The notes under the pieces were generated by a model. The model did not search any database. It was not told the origin of the DNA and saw only the letters and a list, made by a program, of their open reading frames with translations. A stretch of 64,000 bases of DNA from Hyphochytrium catenoides (taxonomy: Eukaryota > Protista > Hyphochytriomycota), in assembly GCA_900088475.1 (NCBI GenBank), contig FLMG01000505.1, forward strand, positions 21,337 through 85,336, read 5' to 3'. Shown piece by piece: positions 9,938 through 16,467 of this stretch. The first letter of the stretch is position 1; each line of letters starts with the position of its first letter. Both the position numbers and the translations under genes were made by a program.

Positions 9938-12900
9938 ATGACGTTATTTGCGGCTCGAGAAGCGTGGGATGGCTCGTTAGGGATTCGCGCTCGACTGCCT
10001 GCGCGTCTGGCTTATATAGTCACGAGCAAGCGGCGGAGCTTGATCGTTGGATTGTTTGTTCTCTTTTTTCTAGATTACGTCATCAAGCATCCGAAGGTTA
10101 GTCCCAATGCTGAGCTGCTTGGATATCGTCTTTGTGTTCTCACACAGTATTGGTGTTCGTACAGGGCTTCTTAAGGCAGTCTCTCCTGATTTCAAGCCCA
10201 CAATTCGTGAATGAAGCTTGTGGCTGGGACTATGAGGCCTCCTGGACGATTGGAATAATGAAGGGAACGTCACCCCTTACTTTACGATTCCCAAAGGACG
10301 TTAGGAACCCAATAGTCACCTGCGCAATGGTGAAGGACGTAAACGTCAGCTTTGTGGCTGATCCCTTCTTATTCATCCCTTCCGAAACGCGGGCCTCACT
10401 TCATGATGAAGAAGCAAAGGCTGACTTTGATTTGGTCTTCGCACACCAGTCCACTTGGTTTTTGTTTTTTGAGCAGAAGAATCTACAACGGTACATTGGA
10501 GAGATCGGGGCACTGATGAGCATGGATAGTGGGCAAACTTGGCAAAGTGTGGGAACAGTCCTCAGAGAGCAGTTCCACTTGTCCTATCCTCTCGTCAAGT
10601 TTCACGAAGCCTCTCGAAGGTAAGTCTGCTGGAGCTTCGCTTGGGACCACGTAGTAAACGAACCATGCTTCTCCCGCTCCATGCCACGACGTTAGATTTC
10701 TGATGATACCTGAGACGAATGAAGCGAATGCTATTCGGATATACACGACATCCATTGAGGAGTTTCCAAGGGGTTGGGTTCTTCATAGGACCATGCTGAC
10801 GGGTAAAGACAGTAGATAGCCTTCCAAAGACTTCCTGAGCTTCGCTTACAATGGTTATCTCCTAGGAAAGGAGTTTGTTGATACATCTCCTGTCTTCTTT
10901 GAGAATACATGGTGGATTTTCACCACGGTCTCGGGGACATTGTATCTGTACTACACAGATGATCTTCTTGAGCCCTGGCAAGAGCATCCGAACTCGCCCA
11001 TCTACACGAAAGAAAAGCGCTTTGGGCGGAGTGCTGGACCTCCTGTGGTGTACGACAATTACATATACCGTTATGCCCAAGACTACTCCCGGTGGTACGG
11101 AGAGAAGACACATATTTTCCGTGTGACTGAGCTCAGCAAGACGCGTTATTCGGAAAAGCTTGTCCATACGGTGAAATGTGGCATAGGAGAGTGGTGCGAG
11201 TATCGACTTCATCACATCGATGCGCATGCACTGGAGACACATCAGTGGGTGGCTGTAGTCGATGGAGACAACCATCCCTACAACTATGAATGGAAGAAGC
11301 GCGAAGGCACGTGGACTGCACTGAAACGGATAGCATTGTTGTCTTTGTTTTTGACAATTATGCGCTTCCTCTGTTCAACGAAGTCGGATTCCAGGATGCC
11401 AAGGAGAAAGAGCTTGACTATACTAGTAGTTGGCGAGAGACGAACGTTCAGCCACATCCGGTCGACACTCAGCCGCTCTGTTGCTCTGGGCTTCGTGGCC
11501 GTGAACTCGCTTGTATTCCGTTCCAACAAAGCTCTCATAGAACGCTTGGCTCTGGTTGCGGACCTGTTAGTCTTCTACAGATTGCAGGTCTTAGCGTATG
11601 CAATTAGTTGGCTGGCGGCCTTCACAATAATTCTGCTAGGAGTCATGCCTCGCTTGTGCTGCTACGATTGTAGCTATGACCATACGATCTGGTCAGAAAA
11701 GTCAGCGACCTTGCAGGACTTAGTTATTGTGACTCAGGCTAGTCAGGGCTATTTCGATAGGCTGGAGAACTTGGTTGGATCAGTGCATGTCTGGGAGCCA
11801 CAAGCAAGAATCGTTATTTATGATCTGGGCCTAGCTCTGTGGCAGGTAATTGACTGGTGGACGCCTTCTACTGAGTATACTACTAACTTCTTATATATGT
11901 AGAGGCAGAAAGCACTCTGTTGGATGAATGTGGAAGTCCGGGAGTTCAACTTCACACAATATCCAGTCCACGTGAAAAGCCTATGGAACTTTGCTTGGAA
12001 ACCCCTTGTGATTGAGGATGCTTTGAGACTGGATTCTGCTATATTAGTGCTAGACGCGGGAGTTGAACTACGGCGAGAGCTGACGCCAATTAGGAGAGAG
12101 GTAGGTGAAGCTGCAATACCACCGGTGGTCTGTGATATCTAAGGCACACATGATATCCCAGCTCGTTCGACATGGCTATTTCGGCACCAATCAAGTCGGC
12201 TTCGTTTTGGGTGACACTCACCCCGTGACCTTGCGAAAGATCCTGGACAATATTCCAGAGTCACCTCCACCGGAATACTTTGCCAATAAGAAACTTTGTG
12301 CTGGTGGAATCCAGGGCTACCTTAGGCACTCAGCAGCCTGGCAACAAGTAGGATCGCGCGCCATCAATTGCTCGCTTGACCCAGAGTGCATTTCTCCCAG
12401 CTTTCCTGTTCGACAACACAACTATGACCAATCGGTCTTGAGCCTATTAATGTATACATATGGCTACAAATGCGATGATGAAGATCTATACGCGCAGTGG
12501 TTTCTAGGGCAGACGACTCCAGATGAGACCGCCAAGAATGACGTGGTCTTGGCTCTTCGTAAGTATAACCATCTAGGGCCATATCGCAAGCATATTAAAG
12601 TACAGGTGAGGTACCCGTTCTGTTGCACAAAGAACAAGTCTTAACTCTTTGACATCAAGCAGACGAACTGTACTCCATTGCAAAGCGCAAATAGGCACTC
12701 GGTTGTCGAAAGTAGCGCTCTTTTGGTCGATGAGGAAGTGAAGAAGTGTTTATTGGACAACAAGTATGTGATGACCGCCTGTGAAGAAGCCCTAGCGAAA
12801 TCAGCATCCACCGGTGGCATCACCTGGAGATTGAGGATGAAAGCTGGATGGAACCACGTCAGATTCTCCTGCTATAGAGCATTTTGGTGTCCTTGGGCTC

Positions 12901-12995
12901 ATGTCATTGCTGCATTTGTTACATTGATAGTCTCCTTTGCCTTAATAATCCCACGGAAACGCCGCCAATCCGCTGGGCATCCGAGATGGGATTGA
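9938..12995 (+). CDS. Multi-exon membrane protein: GINT1-type N-terminal beta-propeller + TM segments + DUF1647 putative glycosyltransferase domain + C-terminal TM
   Basis: Propeller motifs as in plant GINT1 N-terminus: 'CGWDYEASWTIGI..G.SP', 'NPIVTCA', 'SFVADPFLF', 'LFFEQK', 'FHLSYP', 'WQEHPNSPIY', 'YRYAQD...YG', 'HHIDAH...VAVVDGD'. C-terminal half has DUF1647-like motifs 'VIVTQAS..YF..L.NL..S', 'IVIYDLGL', 'YP.HV..LWNFAWKPLVI', 'LDAG', 'AGGIQG', 'C.LDPECISP', 'HNYDQSVLSLL'. GT-AG introns at ~10097, 10620, 10803, 11846, 12101, 12606. Confidence 0.85.
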
Positions 12996-13281: not shown

Positions 13282-14805
13282 TCACGCAATGTGATCGTGC
13301 CTAGGCAAAGTATAGCTCTTCCGCCGTATGGCTGAGGGTAGTAGCTGCCTAAAGGAAGAATGGGATAATCTTCCGCGACAAACAAACATTCCTACCACAA
13401 CGCCTAAGAACATAAGGCGGATCAAGATGTACTTCACCCAATCGACTTCGTCCTCGATGTAGCCCGATCGGATGCATATCGCTAGTGCCGAGAGTCCACC
13501 AATCAAACAACTGGAGCCTAGCGGATAACCTTCCAGAAATCGATGGATCTGCAGCATATATGTGGTGTCTATGTTATGAAAGGTCATCCACATATCGTGC
13601 AAGTCTGCGACCTCATACAATCTTGGACCTCCATAAATTCGAAATAGAGATTCAGCCGCGCATCCCCAGAACTCGTGAGGGGGATACTGGTGCATCATAG
13701 GATGGGCCACAAGTCTTGTCCCTGTCTTCTCCGCACACTGGGAGACGGTGAGATCATGGTATATAGTAGAGGGACATAAGCCCTTGTGATAACCTTCGAT
13801 CATGGATGTGACAGATTCGCGGCTGAAAATTTGACCAGCTCCCAAGTGCAGATAGCCGAAAGGATTATCGCCAAACGCGTCTTTCGTCCCGATGCGAAGA
13901 GACTGCACAAAGTGCCAAAGCACATTCGGCCGCAGGTATGTACTTTCGTTGCACATAACAAAGAAGCTTGCTTTGGGAAACTCTTGAACAGCATGAGACC
14001 ATATCCTCCATGTGTCTGGAAGGGCTTCGACAGACTGGCGATATTTTTGAGTGGTGGATGACTCTAGAGATACTGAACCATCCGATGTTATGAAGCGGAC
14101 CTTATAACCCATGTTGGCCGCAGCCCCTCCCCAAGACCTCCGGACGGCCTCAGACTGAGCAGTTGAGGCGTCACCTGAGGTGAGGATAAGAATAGCCACT
14201 TGGTCAGGGCTTGTCAAGTGGCTTTGAGCATCGATAGGTGACGATCTGTAGCTTTGCAGAACTTTTTGAAGCATGTGAGTGTCTGCCTGGTATCGCACAG
14301 GATGCTCCCCCAGGGGACTGGGTTTGCATGCAGACGCCATTAAGCTCACAATCACAGATCGCAATGTAAAAAGGCCCAGAATAATACCGAGGGCCCATAA
14401 AGGCCAATGCCTGTAGTTCCATAGCAGGTGAAGCTGGTGACACCAGCGAGCACGCCTACTCCTGGTTTGATTCAGCATCGCTGCTAGATAGGAGGCAGAG
14501 AGGTGAGAAGTGTGCAGGAAGTCGGTAGAAGTACTGCTGCCATAGCCACTGTTCAGGGTGAGCAGCCAAGCAGCAGCAGGCCGTACTGTTCCCGCTGCAT
14601 GATAGTTATTACCCTTCCGTCCTATCTCCCTTCGGAATGGAGAGGTCCAGCCAAAGCTCTCATCGATCTGCTGAAGAGGAGGCAGAAAGCGCTTGGCCTT
14701 CGTCTCTTGATGCATCCTTTGACAGCGCGAAGTTACTCCGCGCCAAGCCTCTTGGGTGAGCAGGGCAGCAACCTGCAGACCGCCCTTCTCCAGATCTTGA
14801 TCCAT
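13282..14805 (-). CDS. Intronless GT31 (Fringe/C1GalT1-like) glycosyltransferase-fold protein with degenerate DxD motif
   Basis: 507-aa ORF. TM 'WPLWALGIILGLFTL', then 'VAILILTS...AVRRSWG', 'FFVMCNESTY' (canonical xKADDDTY), 'GYLHLGAGQIFSRESV' (canonical GYxSGGAGYVLSREA), 'HDLTVSQC' (canonical EDVxxGxC), 'MTFHNI'. Extra C-terminal TM. Confidence 0.8.
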   Translation of the reverse strand: MDQDLEKGGLQVAALLTQEAWRGVTSRCQRMHQETKAKRFLPPLQQIDESFGWTSPFRREIGRKGNNYHAAGTVRPAAAWLLTLNSGYGSSTSTDFLHTSHLSASYLAAMLNQTRSRRARWCHQLHLLWNYRHWPLWALGIILGLFTLRSVIVSLMASACKPSPLGEHPVRYQADTHMLQKVLQSYRSSPIDAQSHLTSPDQVAILILTSGDASTAQSEAVRRSWGGAAANMGYKVRFITSDGSVSLESSTTQKYRQSVEALPDTWRIWSHAVQEFPKASFFVMCNESTYLRPNVLWHFVQSLRIGTKDAFGDNPFGYLHLGAGQIFSRESVTSMIEGYHKGLCPSTIYHDLTVSQCAEKTGTRLVAHPMMHQYPPHEFWGCAAESLFRIYGGPRLYEVADLHDMWMTFHNIDTTYMLQIHRFLEGYPLGSSCLIGGLSALAICIRSGYIEDEVDWVKYILIRLMFLGVVVGMFVCRGRLSHSSFRQLLPSAIRRKSYTLPRHDHIA

Positions 14806-15306: not shown

Positions 15307-16467
15307 ATGGACGACAAATGCTATGTTGGCACTCATCTCTCACCCATAGAGAGTGCTAGGAAGCGTGTTTCGGATTGTCGGAATGGCTGCCCTGATGGTA
15401 TTTGCGATGACTTTTCCGACCTTTCAAAGAAGGAGCAGCTGCGACAGTCTCCAAGATTGGGTCTTACCCTTGTAGGGCTATATGGAGTTCTTGTCTCCAT
15501 AATATGCCTCTATCAATGCTCTCGCATAGACGATCTGCAACTGCAGGTTGTAAAGAGGATGCAGCCACCCTTCGCACTATCTCCGGAATATGGCGCCAAT
15601 AGATCGCATCAGGATGGTTGTGATCTATGCAGAAGTTCATCATCACGAAGGAGCTTGTCAGATAATGCTAGTAGGGGATATCCAGTTCCAAATTACGTGC
15701 ACTTTGTTTACGCTAACAAGCAAGACGCGGTTCCAGATCTTCCATATTGGGTTTATCTTAATATTGCGATGGCCAAGGATGTGCAGAAGCCTGAAAAGAT
15801 CTTCTTCCACTGTGTCCAGGAACCTCGGGGCAGATGGTGGGATAGGGTGAAAAGCTGGGTGGAGATGCATATCATTCGGGACGTGACGGAAATTTTTGGA
15901 AACCCTATATACCACAGTGCCCACAAAGCTGACATCATTCGGATGGAAGTACTGCTCAAGTATGGAGGTATCTACTTTGACACAGACGTCCTTCTGCTAA
16001 AGAATCTGACACCTCTACGAGCCTTCCCGTTCGTCATGGGAATTGAAGAACATGGGGTCGGCCTGGGAAACTCGGTAATGATCTCCGCCCCTGGGGCAAC
16101 ATTTTTGGAAAGGTGGTACGAGATGTATCGTACCTTCGATCACACCGATTGGGACTATCATTCAGTCCAGCTGCCATTCCACCTGTCTCAGGCTTATCCC
16201 ACGGACATTGTGCTTGTACCCAAGGCAGGATGGTTCTATCCCTTCGGAGGGGTGAAAATCAAGCTATTCGGAGACTCTATATTGGACAATTCTAACCATT
16301 GGGCTCAGCATTTATTCCACAACATGGTGAAGTCGAGATTAGATGTGGAGGTTACAGGCCCGAGTTACTTCTTCAGAAAGCGTAATACGTACACAGTGGC
16401 AATAGTCACACGCAACACCACGGATTACCCGCATGTCATGGAAGCCTTGACGGTCGGAGAGGACTAG
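15307..16467 (+). CDS. Intronless GT32 family glycosyltransferase (DxD sugar-binding; alpha-1,4-GT/SUR1/OCH1-like), type II membrane protein
   Basis: 386-aa ORF with TM 'LGLTLVGLYGVLVSIICLY', 'VPNYVHFVY', 'AHKADIIRMEVLLKYGGIYFDTDVLLLK', 'LGNSVMIS.PG..FL..W', 'WDYHSVQLP'. Confidence 0.9.
   Translation: MDDKCYVGTHLSPIESARKRVSDCRNGCPDGICDDFSDLSKKEQLRQSPRLGLTLVGLYGVLVSIICLYQCSRIDDLQLQVVKRMQPPFALSPEYGANRSHQDGCDLCRSSSSRRSLSDNASRGYPVPNYVHFVYANKQDAVPDLPYWVYLNIAMAKDVQKPEKIFFHCVQEPRGRWWDRVKSWVEMHIIRDVTEIFGNPIYHSAHKADIIRMEVLLKYGGIYFDTDVLLLKNLTPLRAFPFVMGIEEHGVGLGNSVMISAPGATFLERWYEMYRTFDHTDWDYHSVQLPFHLSQAYPTDIVLVPKAGWFYPFGGVKIKLFGDSILDNSNHWAQHLFHNMVKSRLDVEVTGPSYFFRKRNTYTVAIVTRNTTDYPHVMEALTVGED

Follow-up and report, generated by a model that had tools for sequence, protein, structure and literature searches.

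A GINT1-type beta-propeller joined to a DUF1647 domain in Hyphochytrium catenoides: a probable membrane-bound glycosyltransferase built on a shared scaffold

In plant GINT1, the glucosamine inositolphosphorylceramide transferase 1, an N-terminal propeller (GINT1_N) for which we know of no role is followed by a catalytic domain of family GT64. What, then, is encoded by a gene in which the same propeller is followed by a different domain, DUF1647? Such a gene is found at positions 9938-12995 on the forward strand of a 64,000-nucleotide stretch of the genome of the protist Hyphochytrium catenoides (contig FLMG01000505.1, positions 21,337 to 85,336), referred to here as the window. Here, we describe the fusion, its distribution and the predicted folds of its two halves, and argue that it is probably an intact gene for a secretory-pathway protein that spans the membrane four times, with a propeller and a DUF1647 transferase domain that would both lie in the lumen.

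That the two domains belong together is a fact of the DNA and independent of any gene model, since the propeller ends and DUF1647 begins within one open exon: in the open frame 10820-11899, the final 150 propeller residues stand together with the first DUF1647 motifs. An earlier note on this DNA had listed the motifs by which it recognised the two halves, and all of them are present in forward frames, both those of the propeller (SWTIGIMKGTSP, NPIVTCA, FVADPFL, HLSYP, WQEHPNSPIY, AQDYSRWYG and HHID..VVDGD) and those of the C-terminal domain (IYDLGL, AWKP, LDAG and HNYDQS). The residues that are nearly invariant in GINT1_N (ADPF, FFE, IPE, H..SP, AQD..YG, HH.D and VDG) can likewise all be read in the translation. 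Searches of the gene used single exons or database homologues as queries. Exons 2 and 4 exceed the 27-bit gathering cut-off for PF24793 (GINT1_N), with exons 2-4 covering profile positions 1-304, and exon 5 by itself passes the 25.7-bit cut-off for PF07801 (DUF1647), the score rising to 36.7 bits when exon 4 is read with it in a six-frame search of the genome; within the window this match is limited to profile positions 52-140. The C-terminal domain matches DUF1647 and not GT64, no exon having a match to PF09258 (GT64). In NCBIfam no exon found a match, and a feature search of the ESM Atlas with exon 4 returned nothing usable.

The exon model (Table 1) is predicted from splice signals, reading frames and the alignment of homologues. 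Open segments in alternating forward frames chain into seven exons, running from an ATG at 9938 to a stop codon at 12993-12995 and giving a coding sequence of 2676 nt, or 891 codons and the stop. The introns, of 57-76 nt, are GT-AG and preserve the frame at all junctions, among them the two that flank exon 3 (10620-10695 and 10803-10865), and at junctions 4/5, 5/6 and 6/7 the translation aligns without gaps to homologues that are free of introns, as in LGLALWQ/RQKALCW against LGLTSEQALIVACW and LTPIRRE/LVRHGYFG against LTIIKRLLWRDKFFS, where the slash marks the junction. The view that two adjacent genes, or one decayed gene, have been read as one can point to exon 7, the weakest portion of the model, which has no phmmer match to homologues at E 1e-3. 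Exon 6, which taken alone has no match in Pfam, retains the Cys, His, Asp and Gln that are conserved in the domain. Such a misreading is very improbable given the parts of both domains in one open exon, the six of six introns that keep the frame, the intron-free homologues that align across three of the junctions, the transcriptome-derived homologues that contain both domains, and the conserved residues, which are intact; a two-gene artefact is rejected because a single exon spans both domains and the homologues carry the fusion.

Hydropathy and Pfam together give the order transmembrane segment 1 (TM1), GINT1_N propeller, TM2, TM3, DUF1647 and TM4, the last being the additional C-terminal segment that had been claimed for this protein. 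An N-terminal TM is found likewise in homologues, a C-terminal TM also in P0009, P0016, P0013 and P0008, and the pair between propeller and catalytic domain also in P0009, P0013, P0016, the plant-type protein P0145 and P0035. Basic residues precede TM1, follow TM4 and occur in the Arg/Lys-rich loop that separates TM2 from TM3. From the positive-inside rule we infer that this loop and both terminal tails are cytosolic, which would place both globular domains together in the lumen. The DUF1647 half has conserved pairs of Cys as well as sequons of the N-x-S/T type (NFT, NCS and NCT), features of a lumenal type that agree with this placement.

The fusion extends well beyond this organism. An exhaustive profile search with exon 4 gathered 3277 proteins at E <= 0.001, and among the best 150 representatives of clusters at 50% identity (phmmer, separate exons) 15 have the propeller followed by DUF1647. 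Both domains were confirmed by Pfam in all ten of the fusion homologues scanned, where PF07801 scores of 19.7-48 bits lie above the cut-off in the majority. Carriers include Mastigamoeba balamuthi (Amoebozoa) and the choanoflagellate Codosiga hollandica, with fusion proteins derived from transcripts, and the green algae Volvox reticuliferus and Dunaliella salina, with fusion proteins derived from genomes, while Astrephomene has a propeller-only fragment; the best identity of any homologue to the window protein is 47%. One further representative, P0026, has the domains in reversed order. In this ENA metagenome protein of 812 amino acids a single N-terminal TM is followed by DUF1647 (82-158 and further on) and GINT1_N (569-812), the same domain pair in what seems an independent arrangement.

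Had this architecture been described before? The note knew of no description, and in the literature searched we found no paper describing a fusion of GINT1_N with DUF1647, nor any mention of PF24793, PF07801 or GINT1_N; the fusion is not rare, however, and is already present in public protein sets, including UniProt, where its entries are labelled automatically and solely as 'GINT1 N-terminal domain-containing protein'. It is thus widespread and catalogued, and unstudied. In that literature DUF1647 appears as a listed gene family of Caenorhabditis elegans, with 14 members in that species and family members located in 'glycoclusters', and in a single mention in work on a Candida mitochondrial protein.

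How a GINT1-type propeller came to be followed by DUF1647 is suggested by its relationships. In a tree of 124 propellers (quick search, midpoint root), those fused to DUF1647 form one group, with support in the Shimodaira-Hasegawa-like approximate likelihood ratio test (SH-aLRT) of 95 when P0026 is left out and 79 when it is included. The propellers fused to DUF1647, to GT64 (P0145) and to an HtrL-like domain (P0035), together with one fragment, are split from the 98 others at an SH-aLRT of 96, many of these 98 being stand-alone or joined to domains of a secreted type. The layout TM1-propeller-TM2-TM3-catalytic domain is common to all three kinds of fusion. The single propeller clade and the common membrane layout support the swap of catalytic domains that the note had proposed, and fit one ancestral scaffold in which that domain was exchanged. 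In the tree of DUF1647 itself, the domains of the fusion type fall in a loose group (support 80) that also takes in some stand-alone or fragmentary proteins; P0026 lies outside this group yet within the same large starred clade (99), which also holds the copies from Adineta and Willaertia, and the copies from the annelid Owenia form a separate starred clade of eight rows.

What the propeller might do can be approached through its fold. A model built on residues 28-349 of homologue P0006 from a 78-row alignment, with a predicted local distance difference test score (pLDDT) of 91.5, identifies GINT1_N as a five-bladed beta-propeller; its best structural matches are active enzymes from the glycoside hydrolase families GH159 (Z 23.7), GH130 (phosphorylases and mannoside synthase, 21-22.6), and GH62 and GH43 (20-21.8). 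Acidic residues that are nearly invariant across bacterial secreted and eukaryotic fused propellers are present in the window, namely the D of ADPF, the E of FFE, the E of IPE and two further D. In a survey of 41 long GINT1_N proteins without DUF1647, the partners were GT64 (n = 1, of plant type), an HtrL_YibB-like domain (Amoebidium), GT4 (n = 3), GT2, GNAT, sulfotransferase and GDSL esterase, and many bacterial members carry F5/8-type-C, PKD or NPCBM modules, as secreted hydrolases do with their carbohydrate-binding modules. The portability ascribed to the propeller is borne out by this range of partners, which clearly points to a portable, carbohydrate-related module. The same enzyme-like fold, acidic residues and hydrolase-like company could be taken to mean that the propeller is the main enzyme, whether glycoside hydrolase, phosphorylase or transglycosylase, and that DUF1647 merely supplies or holds its substrate. 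Counting against this, we know of no activity for any GINT1_N domain, and the activity assigned to plant GINT1 is attributed to the GT64 family; moreover, a propeller enzyme would be compatible with a DUF1647 transferase in one bifunctional protein. We consider it improbable that DUF1647 plays so passive a part.

The DUF1647 domain, modelled on residues 445-760 of P0006 (pLDDT 92.3, predicted template modelling score 0.90), has the GT-A fold that would be expected of the glycosyltransferase that the note had inferred it to be. Foldseek against the PDB returned GT6 (BoGT6a, the best match, and ABO transferases), GT8 (glycogenin and LgtC), LARGE1 and WbbM at E 4e-8 to 5e-7. VIA-align, which is independent of Foldseek, gave glycogenin-1 at Z 15.7 (root-mean-square deviation 3.4 over 205 residues), followed by WbbM (15.6), BoGT6a (15.4), AgtA of GT77 and UGGT of GT24 (both 15.3) and LgtC (15.2), while the GT64 domain of EXTL3 reached just 10.2. 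Of 139 chains at Z >= 8, the top 50 listed are nearly all nucleotide-sugar enzymes of GT-A fold and the top rows all glycosyltransferases; neighbours in the Atlas are clusters of DUF1647, GT8, GT2 and GT92. By this model the fold is GT-A, closest to the retaining GT-A families and nearer to GT8, GT6, GT24 and GT77 than to GT64. The DUF1647 portion of exon 4 aligns to the first strand and first helix of the model. In an alignment of 40 domains, D111 is invariant (40/40, 100%), and K93 (95%), H208 (89%), D211 (84%), Q212 (92%), C191 and C197 (95-97%) and P200 (100%) are strongly conserved; every one of these residues is retained in the window protein, and D111 sits after strand 4, the position of the DxD motif in GT-A enzymes.

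On these grounds DUF1647 would be the sugar-transferring part of the four-pass protein, and probably a retaining, nucleotide-sugar-dependent transferase, because the nearest solved folds are those of GT8, GT6, GT24 and GT77; its activity, donor and stereochemistry are read here from the fold. The propeller, which would face the same compartment, may bind the glycan head of an acceptor held in the membrane, or perhaps trim it. Plant GINT1 offers a mirror, in that the same propeller and TM hairpin are there joined to a GT64 domain glycosylating glycosyl-inositol-phosphoceramide (GIPC). A GIPC-type acceptor for the protein of H. catenoides, in favour of which the GT32 gene 2.3 kb downstream was counted, is drawn by analogy with the plant enzyme; it is the weakest step of the proposal and we regard it as doubtful.

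Several results weigh against a DUF1647 transferase or against such an acceptor. Both folds were predicted on P0006, which is 47% identical to the window protein, whose own domains are split by introns. In place of a canonical DxD, DUF1647 has D-A-G-x-E (LDAGVE), the third position being Gly in 82% of the relatives, with a Glu two residues on. With hhalign, DUF1647 and the Escherichia coli GT8 enzymes WaaJ and WaaO were aligned over 29 columns round the Asp motif at an insignificant probability of 3.4%, weakly pairing the invariant Asp with the first Asp of their DAD motif, and among the sequences of solved structures not one chain matched the DUF1647 profile, even at E 10. No activity of DUF1647 proteins is reported in the literature found, which lists the C. 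elegans families. As for the acceptor, genome searches found no AUR1-type inositolphosphorylceramide (IPC) synthase (PF14378), no GT8 of IPUT1 type (PF01501) and no GT64, and the only synthases found are of the PAP2_C type, from which the lipid product cannot be deduced.

The lack of the second acidic residue of DxD (D-A-G) also invites the alternative that DUF1647 is of GT-A fold but not a Leloir enzyme, being instead a sugar-1-phosphate transferase of the Stealth/GNPT kind, some other nucleotide-dependent enzyme, or an inactive binding domain. The GT-A fold list does include GlcNAc-1-phosphotransferase (Z 12.2), CpsY (11.9) and MobA (10.1), and the literature found holds no biochemistry of DUF1647 that would speak otherwise. 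The top rows, however, are all true transferases, some 3 Z-units above these phosphotransferase-type matches; BoGT6a, a metal-independent GT6, indicates that a GT-A enzyme can function without DxD; and the invariant Asp with the conserved Lys, His and Asp-Gln argues for a conserved active site. We therefore judge this alternative unlikely and keep to DUF1647 as a probable glycosyltransferase. Membership of CAZy GT8 has no backing from Pfam, as PF01501 has no match in the gene, and a GT8-like reading of the FCAGG and DQS motifs was supported by no test.

A broader proposal can be put forward tentatively, and with less expectation that it will hold in full: a pan-eukaryotic scaffold may have undergone at least three transferase exchanges (GT64 in plants; an HtrL-like domain in an ichthyosporean; DUF1647 in hyphochytrids, amoebae, green algae and choanoflagellates), DUF1647 might found an unrecognised retaining glycosyltransferase family, the propeller might provide a second active site as a hydrolase or phosphorylase, and the whole might carry out a two-step remodelling of glycolipid head groups.

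The genome searches covered a 61.0-Mb assembly in 4759 contigs, in which the fusion gene is the sole GINT1_N locus and the sole DUF1647 locus found by profile searches. The search that found no GT64 (PF09258) there was run without a positive control, although the same Pfam library gave P0145 a score of 1.1e-61. The two PAP2_C matches (PF14360, sphingomyelin/IPC-synthase type; 73 and 62 bits), at G000:C1469:26941-28105, are on opposite strands with some 700 nt between them. Near the fusion gene in the window, a single-exon open reading frame (ORF) of 386 amino acids at 15307-16467 on the forward strand, the one 2.3 kb downstream, has a GT32 Gly_transf_sug DXD region (PF04488, E 7.8e-11) with the motif YGGIYFDTD, and belongs to the family of the fungal IPC mannosyltransferases and Och1. 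Between the two, at 13282-14805 on the reverse strand and tail-to-tail with the fusion gene, a single-exon ORF of 507 amino acids has a sub-threshold Fringe-like match (PF02434, E 0.066) and nothing in NCBIfam. The idea of these three genes as a conserved cluster found no support, the arrangement being absent at the locus of homologue P0014 (L006:1-2761), the only homologous locus read, where there are no GT32 or GT31-like neighbours, three genes with rhamnosidase domains lie upstream, and other neighbours are unannotated.

Table 1. Predicted exons of the GINT1_N-DUF1647 gene and the features within them, in window positions.
Feature	Positions	Strand	Evidence
Exon 1: ATG, basic N-terminal tail, TM1 (about 10037-10087)	9938-10096	+	First ATG of the open frame; donor GTTAGT at 10097; hydropathy peak SLIVGLFVLFFLDYVI
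Exon 2: first GINT1_N blades (SW.IG, NPIVTCA, FVADPF, FFE, HLSYP)	10165-10619	+	PF24793 82.8 bits, E 3e-23; phmmer to P0006 1.7e-33
Exon 3: middle of propeller, MIPE motif	10696-10802	+	PF24793 15.1 bits, E 0.012, profile 124-157; phmmer to P0006 3.3e-9
Exon 4, whole	10866-11845	+	GT-AG bounded
Exon 4, first part: final propeller blades (WQEHPNSPIY, AQD..YG, HH.D, VDGD)	10866-11305	+	PF24793 88.3 bits, profile 150-304; custom propeller hidden Markov model on exon-4 residues 1-144
Exon 4, middle: TM2 (about 11318-11374), Arg/Lys-rich loop, TM3 (about 11579-11653)	11306-11689	+	Hydropathy; P0007 aligns along the whole linker
Exon 4, end: start of predicted DUF1647/GT-A domain (VIVTQAS..FDRLENLVGSVH, IYDLGL)	11690-11845	+	PF07801 17.2 bits, positions 52-100, E 0.0045
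Exon 5: DUF1647 core (YPVHV, AWK, LDAGVE at 12050-12067; invariant Asp at 12053-12055)	11903-12100	+	PF07801 26.5 bits
Exon 6: C-terminal half of predicted GT-A domain (CAGGIQG, C..PECISP, HNYDQS at 12417-12434, RK...GPY)	12162-12605	+	phmmer to 13 fusion homologues, same region, 6e-22 to 4e-13
Exon 7: C-terminal extension, TM4 (about 12894-12953), basic tail RKRRQS, stop	12663-12995	+	Hydropathy 2.39; Cys right after the junction aligns with homologues

The fusion provides a functional lead for an uncharacterised family. DUF1647 occurs in C. elegans and many protists and has no assigned function; its fusion to GINT1_N in two domain orders, taken with the modelled GT-A fold, gives it a concrete candidate assignment as a probable retaining glycosyltransferase. 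For GINT1 in turn, the same propeller and TM hairpin combined with three catalytic domains, and with a hydrolase-like acidic set that has been kept, suggest that the propeller recognises or processes the acceptor.

Among known systems, plant GINT1 (GINT1_N with GT64, here P0145) is like the window gene in its PF24793 match, its TM layout and its propeller clade, and unlike it in having GT64 where the window gene has DUF1647 and in lacking the C-terminal TM; the window gene is not a GINT1 orthologue. The stand-alone DUF1647 proteins (the C. elegans T15D6 family and those of Adineta, Owenia and Willaertia) have the PF07801 motifs YDLGL, AWK, LD.G.E and H..DQS in common with the window protein, but have a single TM or a signal peptide and no propeller. 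The retaining GT-A enzymes (glycogenin, LgtC, ABO, BoGT6a, UGGT and AgtA) resemble the DUF1647 model in fold, at Z 15.2-15.7 over 198-226 residues, and in the Asp after strand 4; DUF1647 differs from them in having no significant sequence relation, in D-A-G-x-E instead of DxD, and in standing outside their Pfam families. The five-bladed propeller enzymes of GH159, GH130 (beta-mannoside phosphorylases and synthase), GH62 and GH43 are alike in fold to GINT1_N at Z 20-24, and close GINT1_N relatives give weak Pfam signals for GH43 and GH32N, whereas GINT1_N forms a separate Pfam family and is here tethered to the membrane beside a transferase-type domain. P0035 of Amoebidium parasiticum (807 amino acids; PF09612, HtrL_YibB-like, E 2.4e-11) has the same scaffold and belongs to the same propeller clade but carries a third kind of C-terminal domain, and the scaffold has therefore been re-used at least three times. 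The fusion of H. catenoides is a variant of this GINT1-type scaffold and no new kind of system.

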